Origin: Wallemia ichthyophaga EXF-994
Taxonomy: Eukaryota; Fungi; Basidiomycota
NCBI RefSeq assembly: GCF_000400465.1
Contig: NW_008806287.1
Location: 300,824-332,823 of the forward strand
Direction: 5' to 3'
DNA: 32,000 nt
Position numbers and translations under genes: made by a program
In this document: positions 9,231 through 20,305 of the stretch, one piece after another
How the letters are laid out: each line of letters opens with the position of its first letter
How positions within the stretch are numbered: the stretch's first letter is position 1
The notes under the pieces: model-generated
Seen by the model: only the letters and a program-made list of their open reading frames with translations
Databases searched by the model: none
What the model was told of the DNA's origin: nothing

Positions 9231-10121
9231 ATGCTATCAAAACTCGCACTCGCTTCTCTCGCCGCTTACGCTAGCGCACACGGTATAGTGTCGCAGGTAA
9301 TGGTCGGTGGCCAGTGGTACAACGGAGCCAATTACGGCTCAACAAATGACAACTCCCCTGTACGCGGATTCCCTTACGACGGAGGGTATGTGCCATACTA
9401 CAACGTGAACACAGATGACATCGTTTGCGGTGCGAATGGCCACGGTTCTGTACCAGTAACAGCAACTGTCAATGCCGGCGACGACGTGAAGCTCCGCTGG
9501 CACGGTGACCGTGGTCCAACTGGGGACTACTGGGGCCACTACGAGGGTTCTGTAATGGACTACCTGATGCGCTGCGACGGTGATTGCAGCAACTTCCAGA
9601 CAAGCTACGGCAATGCGCGCGTGTACAAGATCTGGGAAGCTGGTCTCGACACATCTCAGCCACGCCCTGACCAAGGTTTCTGGCCATCTCGTCCTCAAGG
9701 TGATGGTTTGTGGGCAATGGATGACATGTCTCGTAACTGGGGATCATGGCACACAGTAACCATCCCAGCCACAACCGCACCAGGCCAGTACATGCTGCGT
9801 CACGAGCTTCTCGCTCTCCAGGCCGCATCGAACCTTGCAGGCACAGCTGAGACTCCAATCGGTGGTCCACAATACTACCCTGCTTGTGTCCAGCTCAATG
9901 TCGTCAACAATTCCGGCAACGTTGTCTACCCACCTGAAACTCCAGTCAGGGAAATCTACAGCACTGGTGACGCTCAGGTCAACATTTACACTCCTGCTCC
10001 TAACGGTATCGAACATTTCGATATCCCTGGTCCAAATGTTGTCAACACCTCCCCTTACAAGCGCTCCGCTCGTCGTGCTGATCGCCACGCACGTCGTGAG
10101 GCTTTCGGTAAGACTCACTAA
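9231..10121 (+). CDS. Secreted AA9 (GH61) lytic polysaccharide monooxygenase
   Basis: 16-aa signal peptide then His1 (HGIV, 9279), DIVCG, second brace His in WGHYEG (9537), GQYMLRHE, and PQYYPACVQL with the axial Tyr. The true start is the ATG at 9231, not the TTG at 9120. Confidence 0.9.
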   Translation: MLSKLALASLAAYASAHGIVSQVMVGGQWYNGANYGSTNDNSPVRGFPYDGGYVPYYNVNTDDIVCGANGHGSVPVTATVNAGDDVKLRWHGDRGPTGDYWGHYEGSVMDYLMRCDGDCSNFQTSYGNARVYKIWEAGLDTSQPRPDQGFWPSRPQGDGLWAMDDMSRNWGSWHTVTIPATTAPGQYMLRHELLALQAASNLAGTAETPIGGPQYYPACVQLNVVNNSGNVVYPPETPVREIYSTGDAQVNIYTPAPNGIEHFDIPGPNVVNTSPYKRSARRADRHARREAFGKTH

Positions 10122-10394: not shown

Positions 10395-11693
10395 CTACGC
10401 GGACAGACGCTCCAACACCTCCTCGATGGCGTCAACAGCGCGTGTAAGGATAATTACCTGGTTTGTCAGCAGCGACTGCAGCATGACGAGCACACTCTCT
10501 CTAACAGTGTCTCTGTTAGCGAGGAGTGTCTTGAGGGTCTGCGACGTGCTCATAGCCTTATTCTCGAGCATGTGAAAGAGTGCAGCGTGGAGATCGAACT
10601 CGATGTCCTGGTTAGTAGAGGGGGAGTCATCGAGAGTTTGCAGGCTGCATGCGCCTTCGTCGCTGATGTTCTCATCAGCCAGTGAGCGCATCAAGAAGCG
10701 CAATCCCACTGGCATGTTCTGCGTAAGTGAGAGGTTGAATGTGCATAGTGAGCCGTCTTCAAGCAATAGATTCCACTTGCGTAAAAGGTCTTGCTTGCGC
10801 TGCGAGAAATCCATACCGGCACCGGCACCTACCTTGAATGGAACTATGTCGTACTCAAGGTTGTCAACAGCGAAGCCATAAGCTAGAAGGAGCTCATTGG
10901 TTGCTTTGGCCCCGTAGTTGTTGAATACCTCGCTACCCTCTAAGGCACCGTGCGGCAGACTGATGGCTATTTTGGAAGTGCGTGTATAGATACTATCCTT
11001 CCACACCACTGCCGACATGGGCTTGTGGTTGCCTATGTCCCACAGAGGGACGAGCATCGGTGTGCTACTGCCACTCGTATTATCACTGCTACTCATGCTC
11101 GTGTCTGCATTTCTGCTCCCACTCCCGCTTATCAGTTTCGAGGGGAAGGAGCGTGAGGAGAGCATAGTGAGAGAGTGCTTGAAGACATCGTACGAAAATG
11201 ACGCTAAACCATTAGATGCCAGCCAATCGGTAACGACGACGTAATCCCTTTGCCATTGCAACTCTCGCTCCCGCGTTGTGTTGTACAGACTCGTCGGCTG
11301 CGTGTACTCGAGCTCGGTGGGTGTCCAGTAGAGAGTCGTCAGCGTGCTTCCTATTGGCTGAAGCATAGCGACGTATGCGCGGTGCTTCAGTGCTCTTTGC
11401 AGCGAGTCGGGTTGGTTGTCGTAGTTGTAGTGCAGCGCTAGGTATACGACTACGAGGATATCCTCTCTTAGTGGCGTGTAGCTCAAGGCGTGGAACAGCT
11501 TCCTGCAGGAATCACGCGTTATGCACACACCCTCTGTCACACTGACTATCTCTGTCTCCTGCGCTATGTCTTTCTTCGCTATCCAACTGTAGCCAGATTG
11601 GGGAGAGTACGCAATGTCCATGTCGTCGTGTAGTTCACAGCCATTCTCCTTGAGCCAAGCTTTGAAGTTGTGGATGGTGGTAGTACGAGACAT
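10395..11693 (-). CDS. SET-domain protein lysine methyltransferase (Efm1/Rkm/SETD3-like family)
   Basis: FKAWLKENG, SSRSFP, LVPLWDIGNH and EVFNNYGAKATNELLLAYGF motifs; intronless 432-aa ORF. Confidence 0.85.
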   Translation of the reverse strand: MSRTTTIHNFKAWLKENGCELHDDMDIAYSPQSGYSWIAKKDIAQETEIVSVTEGVCITRDSCRKLFHALSYTPLREDILVVVYLALHYNYDNQPDSLQRALKHRAYVAMLQPIGSTLTTLYWTPTELEYTQPTSLYNTTRERELQWQRDYVVVTDWLASNGLASFSYDVFKHSLTMLSSRSFPSKLISGSGSRNADTSMSSSDNTSGSSTPMLVPLWDIGNHKPMSAVVWKDSIYTRTSKIAISLPHGALEGSEVFNNYGAKATNELLLAYGFAVDNLEYDIVPFKVGAGAGMDFSQRKQDLLRKWNLLLEDGSLCTFNLSLTQNMPVGLRFLMRSLADENISDEGACSLQTLDDSPSTNQDIEFDLHAALFHMLENKAMSTSQTLKTLLANRDTVRESVLVMLQSLLTNQVIILTRAVDAIEEVLERLSA

Positions 11694-13261: not shown

Positions 13262-13875
13262 AAGGCTTCTTTTCTTCATCTTCTTCTTCGTCTGGCTGCT
13301 CACCACCGCCGCCTTGTGCTTGGCCAAGTTGTTGCATCATCTGACACAAAATTAGCTCTATTTAATCAAAATCGCCAACACCACTCACAGCTTGGAGATC
13401 CATTTGACCACCACCTTCACCACCAGGCATATCCATACCTTCCATAGGGTTTGGCTCTTGTACACTGTCTTCCTGCTCGTCCTCATCGACGTAGAGTGAC
13501 CAATCAACGATAACAAAAGGAAGCTTGACTTTCTCCTTCTGCAAGCGTGGCCAGTACTCAGCTCTTGGTGTGGATTTGAGCAGCGTGAGTGTAATACCCT
13601 TACCAGTCCTGTTTACTCTGATTGGCTTGTCGAGTACGCTATCAAACAAGTTTATCTCAAATCCATATTCCTTGCCGTTTGATGTTGCTTGAAAGCTTAT
13701 CTTCTCCGGAGTCAAATCGAGCTTTGGTGTGCCTTCAATGTCACTCAAGTTAATAGTGACGAAGAGTAGATTCCTGTGCAAATTGTTAAGCGTGTAAAAC
13801 ACACAATCCTTTCACTAACTTCTCTGCTTCAGTTTCTGAGCTTCTTTGCGCCCACTTTACTTCTGGATGTTGCAT
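13260..13875 (-). CDS. SBA1: Hsp90 co-chaperone p23 (CS domain), two introns
   Basis: MQHPEVKWAQRSSETEAEK|NLLFVTINL..., AEYWPRLQKEK, VDWSLYVDEDE, and an acidic Gly/Met-rich tail ending EEKKP*. Confidence 0.88.
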
Positions 13876-14223
13876 AATGATCGTACAAGTTGAAGAAACT
13901 TGAAGAAGCTTTTTGATCGTTTGGCGTATATCCTCGTAAATACTTCGCTTTATATCATTTATTGTGCAATACATATCACTCTCCAACCACCCGCTCCTCT
14001 TCCTCTATCACTCCGTCTGTTTTGCTAACCACTTGCGTCATCCGCCGTGGCCCAATGCCTTCATTTTCTCGTAATGCTAAATGTATAAACTTTTAAAAGC
14101 CTTATAGGGATTACGCTTTGCCTTAATTACTCCATGATAAAATAAAGGCAAAAAGTCTTAATCAGATTTTGCTATTGAAGAATTGCGCTTTAGGTGAACA
14201 GTATTAACTGTTACAATTAGAAT

Positions 14224-14230
14224 TATATAT
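14224..14230 (+). promoter_or_regulatory. TATA-like element upstream of the permuted tRNA
   Basis: TATATAT about 20-25 nt upstream of the inferred leader (~14250). Function is inferred. Confidence 0.45.
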
Positions 14231-14262
14231 CAGTTCGAAATAATTCAATGGGAGTAGCTGAT

Positions 14263-14338
14263 ATCGAAAGGTTGCAGGTTCGAGCCCTGCGTCGGTCACC
14301 ACGGCCGGCTGGCTCAATGGTAGAGTATTCGACTACGG
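14263..14338 (+). tRNA. Circularly permuted tRNA-Arg(ACG): 3' half (nt 38-73, 14263-14298), CCAC linker, 5' half (nt 1-37, 14303-14338)
   Basis: Acceptor GGCCGGC/GTCGGTC (5 Watson-Crick + 2 G-U pairs), D-arm GCTC-AATGGTA-GAGT, anticodon stem TTCGA/TCGAA, loop CT-ACG-G|A, variable loop AGGTT, T-arm GCAGG-TTCGAGC-CCTGC, discriminator A. No matching outer halves are visible nearby. T-runs begin at 14346. Confidence 0.88.
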
Positions 14339-14780
14339 CTAAAACTTTTGTTTTTACTGTCCATTTTACAGCTCTACCGGAATTATCTTTACAGACGCGT
14401 TATTATGGGCTAATATTTATATATTTTTGAGTTGCGCGTCTTCAACTAAACGCTTCTTTTCTTTTCGTTGATTTCATGTATAAATAAGCTCTTACGCGTG
14501 CGCAAGTGTAAGCTAGACGCGCAAAAAGTTAAACAGATAGCAACAAAGACTTAGTGCTAAAACGTGGATCTATTTTTATATGCATGTTCCTGCTTTGAAT
14601 TGGTGACATGCACAATTTATGTCGTAGGAGCAGCGAACAATGCGCAATGCGCAACGCGTTAGTGTAGAATAATTAACAAAAAACCTTGATACACTATTTT
14701 AAAAAGAGATAAATTTTGACTTTGTTTTCATGAACTGATTTCACCACTGTCTTCTTGAATAACATCAACGATAAACCAAA

Positions 14781-16431: not shown

Positions 16432-18666
16432 TCACATACTTTCAAACAACAAATTAGCCGCCATTTCCGTATTTTTCTCACAAGCAAGATAGCATTGCTT
16501 GGCTTGTTCAAAGTCAAATCCACCAAATGAACAGAGCTGTGTGATGTTAGTTTTACTCCATTTACTCGCTAACCTTCACTCACATTCTCAATTGCCTCTC
16601 TGTCTGAAGGTGAGACGTCGACTTCTCTTTGTTCTTGCTCTCTTTGCTCTCTTTCCTGTCTAGCCGTCTGTTCAGAAGCTGCAAGAACGTCATGAGGAAT
16701 ATCTTCAGCCTCATTTAAACTTTGTGCATTCGCAGCTGTAACGTGTTAAATGGGAATCAACCATATAACTTAACTCCCACCTTGTGTACTAGCCTGCTCA
16801 CGAGCAATGGCCATAAGATTCAGCCAGCTGCTGCTCTTCAACAATTTCTCCAAATCTCTTTCATCCCTATTGATACCAACCTTCAATGCCAATCTAGATT
16901 CATCCGCACTGAACATTCCAGATGGCTCCAAGAAAGCAATCAGATGCCAATCATTGAGTATATCACAAAGCGCCTCCTTCTTTTCATTAGTGACACTTTC
17001 AAGGTCAACATCATCCGAATTATGGAAACCCAATCCAGTACTCTCAGAAACAACTGGCAAGAAAGTCGAGATAAGCTTGCTGACAGACTGATCCTGGAAA
17101 CCTTGTCTGTTTTCTATTGGAAATACGCTGCTCTTAAACACCGGGTTGGACTGGTTAGGGAAACCGTGTGTGAGATTAACAAGCAGATATTCCACAGGGA
17201 AGCACGGTTTAGCGTTCTTTTTAACATCTATTCCGTACTCATTTTTGTAGCGGTAAAACACATCGGGAATGTACTTTCCCGGTTTAGACTCTTTCATACG
17301 CAGCGTTGATGGCTCGACGGATGGTTCGACGATATCTGCATCGATGAGTGCCATTCCTTGATCAGAGATTTGGAATGCAGATATATCAATACCGCCATTC
17401 TGCGTGCCACTGAGCACGCAAGTGATAAATCTTGAGTTGAATCTACCACTCTTGGATTGTGTTGTTTGTAACTTGTGTTGATTCTGTAAGTGTCCCGCGA
17501 AACACAACTCCAATGAAGATAAAAAGAAACTGTCTTTGTGGCGCTTGAATAGTGGTGACTGAGTGCCCGGTGGTTGGGAGAGATCGGAGTATATCATACC
17601 GAGTACCTCTAATCCAGCATTCTGCGCCAATTCAACGACCCTCTCTTGATCTTCCCATGGTAAGCCGAGAGTCATACCGTCGACTTCACCTTCTTGTGGG
17701 ATCTCATGCACCGCTTCGACGACGGCCTTAATACCCATAGGCACAGCTTCATATGGTGCATATCTACCGAGCAGAATACCAAATCTCTGCAAACCAGAAG
17801 CGCGCCAGAAGTTCAGCAATCCTTCAACCAAACCAGGAGAGGAAAATTCGACATGATCGAGCATTCTGTATTCCTGGACTTGGAGAGTGATAGCGTTAGG
17901 AACCCACTGCTTAAATTTAAAGTCCAATTCTTCTAAAGGTGGTAGCTGCGCGACAGAGGAGGTTGGTGGATTACTATCTTTGAGTTTACGAAGGTATGCG
18001 TGAAATGATAAGTGCTTTATGTTCTGCTGAGCTTGGTATTCTTTGTCGTAAGGCTGAGGAAAAGTGAGAGTGATAAATGGAATACAATCAACGCACCTCG
18101 ATTGGAAGTGTGTTTAGATTACCTTCCCTCGAAGAAGACGACGTCTGGCGAGGTATCTTACCAGACTGCCTAAACCAATGCGCGTCGATTGGATGGTCTT
18201 TTACGAGTTGCCACGGTCTAGCGGGAAGGCTAGAAGTAGTACCAGAAGCAGTGCTAGAGGATTGCGCTGGCTCTGGCACTTTTGCAGAGGAGGCGAAAAG
18301 AAGATCACCGTGCCTAGGAAGAGTGCTAATCAGCTAAATTCCTTGTAAATCCTATCAATCCACGCACTTTATACCCAAATCGGATAACTTCCTCTTTGAG
18401 AGTGACGACAGCTGAGTCTCACCACCCCTAGGCTCATTTGAGAGCGATAGCGTGTGCTTATCGAGTGTAGGTGCACTCTCTATAATCTACACTTTCCGTC
18501 AACGCGAATCCACGCCACCTGCGCTGCTACCCACTCTATCTCCCAGCAATTCGATCGAATCATCTCCACTCAAATCGAATCTGAATGTTCCTTCAGCTGA
18601 GCGTATTCTGACAATCTAAATGACGCCATTAGCGTGTCTATGTGTACTAGCACTCCCACCAACCAT
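16432..18666 (-). CDS. NPL4: Npl4 (Cdc48/p97 cofactor): UBL domain, degenerate zf-Npl4 region, MPN-like domain and C-terminal UBA domain
   Basis: M|IVRIRSAEGTFRF (UBL); KHLSFHAYLRK, AITLQVQEYRMLDHVEF, GLQRFGILLGRY, FPVEYLLVNLTHGFP. Spliced C-terminus EAIEN|LCSFGGFDFEQAKQCYLACEKNTEMAANLLFESM*. Confidence 0.9.
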
Positions 18667-18722
18667 TTCAACGTCAATGTAAACCCTAAAGAGATACAAC
18701 ATTCATATATTTCTTAAAATTA

Positions 18723-20305
18723 TCACATTATCATACAGTTGACATCTTCTATCCCATTCTCCTCCATGTGCTCCTTCTGGGCTTCTTTGTCGTTCGCTTT
18801 CGCTTTCGCGCGGACTTCCTTTGGAAAATACAGCTCCATGAAACCAACGAGGGCTTGATCGAGATTATCTGAATGACTGTCTGAGTAAGTGCTTATCTGA
18901 CGATCGCCGACTCACTTCTATTCGCTGACATCACTACAGGTGCCCTACACAATGGGCAATCTGACTGGCCGCGCTTTTGCATCTTGACGAGGCATCTAAC
19001 GCAGAATATATGAGTGCAGCTACATAATTTGTTAGCTTGTTTCAAACATGAATACACCTAACTCACTTTAACCTAATTGGCTTTGTTTGTTTTGTTAGCA
19101 GCACCCTACCACAACCAATGCACCCACCTTAAACGCAATCTCTTGGCATATTAAACAATTGTAATCGTCTATAGACGGGATTATTGGTATCAATGTCTCC
19201 GTCAGCCTCGCAAGAAGTACTCTAGGCAAGCTGATAGTGTAGAATGTCCAACCGAAGTTAGAGTTCTTGGAACTAGTTGCAGACTGCAACGCGCTCCCTT
19301 CGACACCAGCGAAAGAGTAGAAAGAATCCGTAGGCAGTGCTGTCATTTTCATGTGTTTCTTGAGTATTTTCCGCGCTGCTTCAAGATTCGCAGTATAGAA
19401 CTTTTTAATCTCGAGCAAAGCCATATTCAGTTCCAAGAACTGATCAAGAGCCTGCCGTGATCGCTTTGACTTCATAGTCCGACTATCACCTAGTCCACGC
19501 TTGACGACCTCAGCAGCGAATGCATTCAGACGTATCTCCGCACTCTCTACATCCCTTTCACCCCGACTAGACTCAGTTATACCTTCATATATTGCAGATT
19601 CCACCCAGAGCGTGAAAATCTCCCGCCACGCGTATAAATCATTCGTCTTCTTCTTGTGCAAACCGAATGTCGAATGATTTACCGCACTCGGTCCTGTTAC
19701 ACCTGTTATGGCATTACATAGCGTCTCTACCTGCGTGGCGAACTTCTTCTTTTCAACCATTTGCAGCGCCTCGAGCTTATCGAATGCAGCTGTGAGTGCG
19801 CCCAAGAACTTTGCATCCGCGTTGAGGGGTATGTGAATTTCTTTGTTGGATGGATCTGTGCCATCTGTGAATATTTCTTCCATATTGTCCTGATGCTGCT
19901 TATCAAGGTCCTTGTTTGAGGTACTTGACGTACTCGCGGTGACGGCATCTAAACCGGAAGAGCCCTTCTGAAGGTTGTAGAGACTCAACCACTCCTCCCT
20001 GCTATCATTATCATTGAACTGTACAATAAGTCGAGGCTGTGGCTGATTCAATGGCCCGTCAAGGACATATTCGATGTGGGTATCTTCCGTTTTCCTCAAA
20101 AGCAAATCGAGCAACTTCGATTTATTCAATCCGATCATGTTAAGCTCCTCGACGACATCCGTTAGAAGCTTTTTAAGGTGCTTATACTCGATGCTGTTCT
20201 CCTGCCACTCTGTGGGGAAAGTTAGTGCGATGTGGCACGTGAAGTATAACACACACCCTCTGGGAATTCTTCATTTAGCTGCTCAAATTGTTTCCCGTAT
20301 TTCAT
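18723..20305 (-). CDS. SPX-domain / C3HC4 RING E3 ubiquitin ligase (Pqr1/NLA-like), ending in CMIM
   Basis: MKYGKQFEQ...FPE|EWQENSIEYKHLKK and NMALLEIKKFYTANLEAARKILKKH (SPX). RING CLIC...AFK|PIRLN|CTHIFCVRC...CPLC, which uses a 14-nt micro-exon at 19067-19080. Confidence 0.87.

Follow-up and report, generated by a model that had tools for sequence, protein, structure and literature searches.

Ubiquitylated proteins reach the Cdc48/p97 unfoldase through Npl4, its central ubiquitin adaptor. In animals and many fungi the protein ends in a ubiquitin-binding RanBP2/NZF zinc finger, while budding yeast has none. The NPL4 gene of the salt-loving basidiomycete Wallemia ichthyophaga EXF-994 (Wallemiomycetes) raises the question of what stands in the place of this finger. 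The gene lies on the minus strand at positions 16432..18666 of a 32,000-nucleotide stretch of contig NW_008806287.1 (assembly GCF_000400465.1, positions 300,824 to 332,823), which we call the window. An earlier note on this DNA gave the background correctly as above and read two spliced 3' exons as a UBA domain of the Rad23 type, which it took to have replaced the NZF finger in parallel with the loss of the other zinc fingers. Comparative sequence analysis confirms a real, conserved and lineage-specific domain swap in Wallemia Npl4.

The spliced NPL4 model that we built from the sequence has seven exons on the minus strand: 18664-18666, which holds the ATG only, 18535-18615, 18368-18486, 18097-18313, 16781-18053, 16584-16735 and 16432-16536. 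It encodes 649 amino acids (aa) and matches NCBI models of W. ichthyophaga at 100% identity from end to end. All six introns are GT..AG introns of 43-54 nucleotides (nt), in agreement with the short introns published for this species, for which the mean is 61 nt (PMC3849046). The body of the protein is joined to the linker exon across intron 5 (16736..16780, minus strand, 45 nt, GTGGGA...TACAG). With this intron removed, exon 6 is in frame with the large NPL4 open reading frame (ORF) that ends at 16781; its retention gives a product that stops after ...STQGGS. Exon 6 first encodes a charged linker, residues ~565-601 (16626..16735, minus strand, AANAQSLNEAEDIPHDVLAASEQTARQEREQREQEQR), which is partly homologous to the linker that precedes the NZF in basidiomycetes. 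At its end follow residues 602-615 (16584..16625, minus strand, EVDVSPSDREAIEN), where the phmmer alignment with Rad23 UBA2 starts; this segment holds the pre-helix extension and most of helix 1. Intron 6 (16537..16583, minus strand, 47 nt, GTGAGT...CTAAC...CAG) lies inside helix 1 of the UBA. The coding part of exon 7 (16435..16536, minus strand, residues 616-649) provides the GGF loop, helix 2 and helix 3, as placed by translation, Pfam, phmmer and a structure model, and is closed by the TGA stop codon at 16432..16434 (minus strand). The Npl4 C-terminus is thereby reached 4 residues beyond helix 3. Both exon translations match the tail of the earlier note letter for letter, with 16584-16735 finishing in ...REVDVSPSDREAIEN and the minus strand of 16432-16536 reading LCSFGGFDFEQAKQCYLACEKNTEMAANLLFESM up to the stop; intron 6 also has the borders, the length and the phase, phase 0, that the note had described.

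The last ~48 residues of Npl4 can be assigned to the Rad23 UBA2 subtype of UBA domains, including the extension in front of helix 1. Pfam UBA (PF00627) matches residues 609-645 over positions 2-37 of its 37-position profile, and the tail taken alone scores 25.4 bits at a gathering cut-off of 22.4. When the tail is compared with the PDB by phmmer, yeast Rad23 is found at E=1e-7 and UBA2 of hHR23A/B at E=3e-5 to 1e-4. C-terminal UBA2 domains of Rad23/hHR23 are the sole PDB matches at E<=1e-4, and the next family, the UBA of CBL, follows at E=0.036. The alignments begin at query residues 2-3 and cover the Rad23-specific pre-helix extension 'V.V.P.D..AI..L'. Scanned exhaustively with HMMER, 1.84 billion representative proteins yield 213 matches to the tail at E<=1e-3, and no Npl4 body is found in any of them. 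The UBL/UBA/XPC-binding/UBA architecture of Rad23 is present in nine of the ten top matches examined, the Rad23-specific XPC-binding domain in 107 of the 150 best matches, and the UBA match is located at the C-terminus in 113 of 152. The tail has the conserved signature A.E.L...GF....A.QAY.AC.KNE..AAN.LF. An AlphaFold2 (AF2) model computed from an alignment reaches a mean predicted local distance difference test (pLDDT) score of 89 and places three helices at 7-20, 24-33 and 38-48. Its best Foldseek matches are Rad23 (2qsf_X, template modelling (TM) score 0.81) and UBA2 of hHR23A (6xqi_F, root mean square deviation 0.9 Å), followed by many other UBAs. The modelled structure is a compact three-helix bundle with a G-F loop, here G-G-F, as expected for a UBA. 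The likeness to the C-terminal UBA2 of Rad23 that the earlier note had pointed out is therefore borne out by the PDB ranking, the exhaustive scan, the XPC-binding counts and Foldseek alike. Two further searches were less informative. A word-index search of 5.8 billion proteins with the 74-aa tail gave one candidate and no scored match, which is no evidence of absence since a word index is weak for short queries. In JGI metagenomes, 600 stretches fitted the pattern of the tail, and no relatives were confirmed among them.

Several points weigh against this assignment. The Pfam scan that the earlier note had suggested is passed by the tail alone and is borderline in full-length Npl4, where PF00627 scores only 21.2 bits and falls below the cut-off. 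The alignment behind the AF2 model consisted of Rad23 proteins, which biases the model toward a UBA fold, so that the predicted fold is confirmatory and not independent; the AF2 prediction for the 74-aa tail from its single sequence is weak, with pLDDT 69. The loop reads S-F-G-G-F and is one residue longer than the usual L-G-F; a loop of equal length, LGGF or LGNF, occurs in a minority of Rad23 UBA2 domains. Given the short domain of ~40 aa and the borderline Pfam score, the likeness could be thought a chance property of a helical tail. Against this stand the E value to yeast Rad23, a PDB ranking made up exclusively of Rad23 UBA2, the number of matches in the exhaustive scan with their share of XPC-binding domains, and the conserved signature. 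We regard the chance explanation as effectively refuted.

Whether the tail is part of Npl4 can be judged from a comparison of four Wallemia sequences: W. ichthyophaga itself, a locus of Wallemia sp. (L002, 89% protein identity), W. hederae (L003, GCA_004918325.1) and a metagenomic Wallemia-like fungus (L001, 61% identity, locus of 5064 nt, 28.7% GC). The other three all encode the tail with a phase-0 intron after ...AIEN. The position and phase of intron 6 are the same throughout, with a length of 46 nt in L002 and 47 nt in W. hederae. Intron 5 has 48 nt in both L002 and W. hederae. L001 does not have it, and there the Npl4 body, the linker and UBA helix 1 lie in one ORF. Codon differences in exon 7 amount to 13 synonymous and 0 non-synonymous changes with respect to L002, all 13 at third positions, to 18 and 2 with respect to W. 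hederae, and to 18 and 3 with respect to L001. In the same comparisons, the introns and the 3' flank are only 61-72% identical and contain indels. Mostly synonymous changes in exon 7 next to diverged flanks are the pattern expected of a translated and constrained sequence, and the tail is under purifying selection across the four Wallemia sequences.

This comparison also bears on the view that the 3' exons do not belong to the expressed Npl4, being an annotation artefact or a rare isoform, and that the main product ends at ...STQGGS. Gene calls that rely on ORFs do end at the retained intron 5 (P0002; 385-aa ORF). In L001, however, there is no intron 5 to be retained, and linker and helix 1 continue directly from the Npl4 body. 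Moreover, exons 6 and 7 are strongly constrained, with changes at third positions next to diverged introns and flank, the splice phases are kept in four sequences, an independent gene would have no start codon of its own, and the UBA fold requires both exons. We consider an artefact or rare isoform highly improbable, and infer that the UBA-bearing isoform is the one expressed. A separate small UBA gene is ruled out, as a start codon is absent and helix 1 is located within the Npl4 linker exon.

The GC content of L001, 28.7%, is far under the 45% of W. ichthyophaga and the 40% of W. sebi (PMC3849046). The cluster of L001 comprises 13 members, whose contigs are up to 162 kb long, and L001 may represent an unsequenced or unusual member of the Wallemiales that is common in metagenomes.

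The ancestral state of the C-terminus is apparent from a survey of the best 120 Npl4 homologs, 117 of which are non-Wallemia proteins and apparently nearly all basidiomycete. Within the last 45 residues, 114 of these 117 have the pattern CxxC-x(9-11)-CxxC. The typical basidiomycete NZF reads CPHCTFEN.....DC.VCGLPL, in which the T-F signature for ubiquitin binding is present. The remaining three proteins are truncated or mis-modelled, or contain an additional spacer residue. The tail UBA is found in none of the 117 surveyed non-Wallemia homologs, and a C-terminal finger of the NZF/RanBP2 type is absent from Wallemia Npl4. Upstream of the NZF, the linker motif 'EDIP..V' aligns with Npl4 of Polyporales, Pucciniales and Tremellomycetes, so the replacement is limited to the last ~50 residues. 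By position, the UBA occupies the site of the NZF behind a partly homologous linker, which agrees with the exchange of a ubiquitin-binding NZF for a zinc-free module proposed in the earlier note.

The parallel loss of the other fingers, as claimed there, holds as well. Zinc finger 1 (ZF1) is degenerate in residues 123-143 (RQTSSSSREGNLNTLPIEPYD; 18045..18150, minus strand), a segment that spans intron 4. According to the alignment, none of the ligands C-x-H-x(n)-C-x2-C is left and the segment has been shortened by 4 residues; where relatives have CRHGPKGMCDYC, Wallemia reads SSSSREGNLN. The sequence SSREGNLNTLPIE is the same in W. hederae and L001, and 'SSREGNLNTLPIEPYD', the sequence found in place of the finger, is conserved in all the Wallemia sequences as well. 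For zinc finger 2 (ZF2; PCPSG.HP.WPAGIC.KC), alignment and regular-expression survey place a deletion of 17 residues, including C..H..C..C, at residues 184-198 (DFKFK/QWVPNAITLQ; 17880..17924, minus strand). ZF2 is kept in 116 of the 120 best homologs, and three of the four without it are Wallemia entries. The 114 proteins of the survey that end in an NZF retain both ZF1 and ZF2, while all four Wallemia sequences, including the distant L001, have the changes in both fingers. The MPN tower is held on the D1 ring of Cdc48 by ZF1 and ZF2, which cupric ions disrupt (PMC7785736). In Wallemia, both of these Cdc48-anchoring fingers are predicted to be zinc-free. Together with the missing NZF, all three zinc fingers of Npl4 are lost in Wallemia, as judged from the absent ligands.

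The remainder of the protein is that of an ordinary Npl4. PF05021 (NPL4, MPN-like) matches residues 230-557 with 340.8 bits over profile positions 1-308 of 309, the N-terminal UBX-like domain UN_NPL4 scores 34.4 bits against a cut-off of 21.9, and the zf-NPL4 region reaches 105.9 bits despite its lost zinc ligands. By homology, the protein is a member of the NPL4 family (PF05021 / PF05020 / PF11543), with a zf-NPL4 region that is predicted to be zinc-free. Neither Pfam nor tblastn finds a ubiquitin, XPC-binding or second UBA domain in Npl4 or in the window. As judged by this domain content, Wallemia Npl4 does not belong to the Rad23 family, whose UBL-UBA1-XPC-binding-UBA2 architecture is absent, and the UBA2 module is the sole common part.

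As to the origin of the module, the earlier note had considered exon capture from RAD23. Capture of a single exon is ruled out, as the homology to Rad23 begins 14 codons upstream of intron 6, within exon 6. As the homology extends across it, intron 6 either would have come along with a captured fragment or was gained afterwards. A neighbouring RAD23 gene or pseudogene is also ruled out, since tblastn with seven Rad23 proteins matches the window only at exon 7. The nearest UBA2 sequences have 50-62% identity and are scattered over eukaryotes, among them protists, Blastocladiomycota, Zoopagomycota and chytrids, so that the 45-residue domain does not resolve the donor. The Rad23 with the most similar UBA2 (P0129, 62.5% identity) is of the protist type, and its named relatives are diatoms and an oomycete. 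The clusters of 20 other top matches contain Blastocladiella, Syncephalis, Sorochytrium, Coelomomyces, Neospora, Spongospora and proteins from metagenomes and transcriptomes, and no Wallemia.

What would the UBA do at the end of Npl4? We think it likely that Wallemia Npl4 combines a normal core with a charged linker and a C-terminal UBA of the Rad23 UBA2 type that replaces the ancestral NZF as ubiquitin receptor. The core would comprise the UBX-like domain, the ligand-less zf-NPL4 region, the MPN/NPL4 tower and a C-terminal domain (CTD), followed by a linker of ~40 charged residues. The Wallemia lineage would then have exchanged one flexibly tethered accessory ubiquitin receptor for a zinc-free one. 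Elements linked to UBA function are present in the tail, namely the G-F loop in the form G-G-F and 'AANLLF' in helix 3. Through this loop and helix 3, the UBA would bind the Ile44 patch of ubiquitin, probably with a preference for chains linked via lysine 48 (K48) by analogy to UBA2 of Rad23. Ubiquitin binding and chain preference are thus predicted properties of the tail. Like the NZF of human NPL4, the UBA may increase the avidity of Cdc48-Ufd1-Npl4 for its polyubiquitylated clients, and core unfolding would continue to rely on the tower and groove, which are conserved in Npl4. The NZF of human NPL4 is its highest-affinity ubiquitin site; yeast has no such finger, and unfolding benefits from it without requiring it (PMC9377798).

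Two other roles have to be weighed, of which the first is compatible with ubiquitin binding. The C-terminal UBA could mainly act in cis as a tightly folded cap, free of any unstructured tail, that protects Npl4 against being engaged and unfolded by the proteasome or Cdc48 during its work on polyubiquitylated clients. Heinen et al. (2011) reported that UBA2 of Rad23 protects its host against proteasomal degradation only if it is C-terminal and that an unstructured extension abolishes the protection; in protective UBAs the x-G-F-x loop contains Phe, and the leucine of helix 3 (L392) is needed (PMC3105319). The Wallemia tail is of the UBA2 type, has G-F with Phe as well as 'ANLLF', and ends 4 residues past helix 3, and its charged, probably flexible linker of ~40 residues could otherwise serve as an initiation site. 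On the other hand, the ancestral linker with its small NZF apparently needed no cap, and protection was demonstrated for proteins that dock on the proteasome via a UBL domain. We see a mainly protective function as possible but rather unlikely. Another candidate partner of the tail is a ubiquitin-like domain, either the UBX-like domain of Npl4 itself or that of a UBL/UBX cofactor, which would result in autoregulation or cofactor recruitment on Cdc48. The UBA domains of Rad23 and Dsk2 bind UBL domains, an example being the Dsk2 UBA-UBL complex of PDB entry 2bwe, which is among the Foldseek matches. Npl4 contains a domain with ubiquitin fold, UN_NPL4, that could take this part. The UBX-like domain is, however, normally occupied by the Cdc48 N domain (PMC7785736), and we regard this interaction as improbable.

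Replacement of the NZF by a ubiquitin-binding UBA, which we prefer, can be placed among known Npl4 systems. Human and animal NPLOC4 and nearly all other Basidiomycota share the core of UBX-like domain, zf-NPL4, MPN tower and CTD with Wallemia Npl4. In both cases a small module for ubiquitin binding is tethered by a flexible linker at the C-terminus, and the linkers are partly homologous, as seen in the DIP..V motif (PMC9377798). Wallemia Npl4 differs in having a zinc-free three-helix UBA instead of a CxxC...CxxC finger and in the missing ligands of ZF1 and ZF2. Npl4 of Saccharomyces cerevisiae and Chaetomium thermophilum is likewise fungal and without NZF (PMC9377798, PMC7785736). The yeast protein has no C-terminal ubiquitin-binding module and keeps both Cdc48-anchoring fingers, whereas Wallemia has a replacement module and no fingers. 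The sole precedent that we found for Npl4 without ZF1 and ZF2 is plant NPL4 (Arabidopsis, Marchantia), which likewise lacks ZnF domains (PMC12902296). For plant NPL4, a plant-specific contact of the UBXL-MPN linker is reported and no C-terminal UBA is described (PMC12902296), while in Wallemia the scaffold sequence of zf-NPL4 is retained without the ligands.

The pre-helix extension, the G-F loop, 'AC.KN...AAN.LF' and the position at the extreme C-terminus are the same as in UBA2 of Rad23 and hHR23A/B. In Wallemia, the host is Npl4 and not a UBL-UBA1-XPCB-UBA2 shuttle, the GGF loop is longer by one residue, and identity to any Rad23 found does not exceed ~62%. The UBA-UBX cofactors FAF1, UBXN7 and p47/Shp1 also bring a UBA to Cdc48-Ufd1-Npl4 for ubiquitylated substrates (PMC9377798). 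Their UBA acts in trans and is usually N-terminal, while in Wallemia it is provided in cis, fused to Npl4. Our literature search found no published mention of Wallemia together with Npl4. In those parts of the literature on Npl4, UBA domains and NZF that we consulted, which treat UBA-UBX cofactors and other NZF or UBA proteins, we found no Npl4-UBA fusion.

A further reading, which we put forward as speculative and rather doubtful, takes the three losses together. Wallemia Npl4 could have been rebuilt as a fully zinc-free protein, in which both anchoring fingers lost their ligands and the NZF gave way to a UBA2 of Rad23 origin that serves as K48-chain receptor and degradation-resistant cap. 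This would be a coordinated adaptation and not drift, for example to metal, ionic or oxidative stress at low water activity, as the Npl4 fingers are copper-sensitive. The zinc fingers of Npl4 have been proposed as target of the copper released from disulfiram derivatives (PMC7785736). If true, zinc fingers that are considered crucial in yeast and human Npl4 would be dispensable in a fungus. Apart from this reading, Wallemia Npl4, which has no predicted zinc site and a UBA of the Rad23 type where relatives have the NZF, offers a natural comparison for the contribution of the C-terminal module, for NZF versus UBA in chain selectivity and for the docking of Npl4 on Cdc48 without ZF1 and ZF2. It is also a clean case, within one eukaryotic class, of the functional replacement of a domain by one of like kind but another fold.

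The swap is restricted to this lineage, and public databases already contain the proteins that carry it, for the most part in the form of mis-fused models. The tail is contained in XP_009269154.1/EOR00090.1, in TIA81881.1 and in TIA87032.1 of W. hederae. Most public models of W. ichthyophaga join the upstream SPX-RING gene to NPL4 (XP_009269154.1, 1106 aa; TIA91023.1, 1117 aa), which concerns positions 18616-20252 of the minus strand of the window. The two genes are separate in the annotation of one strain (TIA81892.1 and TIA81881.1) and in W. hederae, and the SPX-RING ORF has a stop codon at ~18724-18726. From these models and the stop codon, the fusion looks like an annotation artefact.

At the 5' end of NPL4, the ATG appears to stand directly before a 48-nt intron (18616-18666, minus strand, ATG/GTTGGT...TTTAG/ATT). 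Splicing at the start codon would result in M-IVRIRS, in agreement with the MIVRVRS start of relatives. An alternative in-frame ATG is located 36 nt upstream and is used in the public model TIA81881.1 (MLYLFRVYIDVEM...). The true start may be either the ATG at 18664-18666 or this upstream ATG.

Outside NPL4, the window contains an apparent circularly permuted gene for tRNA-Arg(ACG) on the plus strand at 14264-14338, with flanks at 14223-14355. Its halves are in reversed order: the 3' half (14264-14298) is followed by 'CCAC' and then by the 5' half (14303-14338). Once rearranged, they form a perfect cloverleaf of tRNA-Arg(ACG), and the break falls at 37/38, the canonical position. A TATATA element is found upstream and a T-run downstream. 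The candidate is neighboured by an unannotated minus-strand ORF (13362-13802) without Pfam match and by HMG-CoA synthase, and its encoded CCA is unusual for a eukaryote. ARAGORN called no tRNA in the window, the permuted gene being missed in its native order. Rfam gives only a sub-threshold match of the candidate to YrlA, which has the same permuted tRNA-like topology.

By synteny, copies are located at 10684-10732 (minus strand) of the W. hederae locus and at 10032-10060 of the L002 locus. The tRNA body of W. hederae has only four substitutions, which constitute two compensatory pairs: C-G to A-T at 3-70 in the acceptor stem and T-A to C-G at 28-42 in the anticodon stem. Leader and trailer have diverged between the species, yet they are mutually complementary within each species. 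The permuted gene is supported by these compensatory changes. Permuted tRNA genes have been listed only for algae, a nucleomorph and one archaeon (Thermofilum), and not for fungi (PMC3978253). Within this window, the candidate may be more novel than the domain swap in Npl4.

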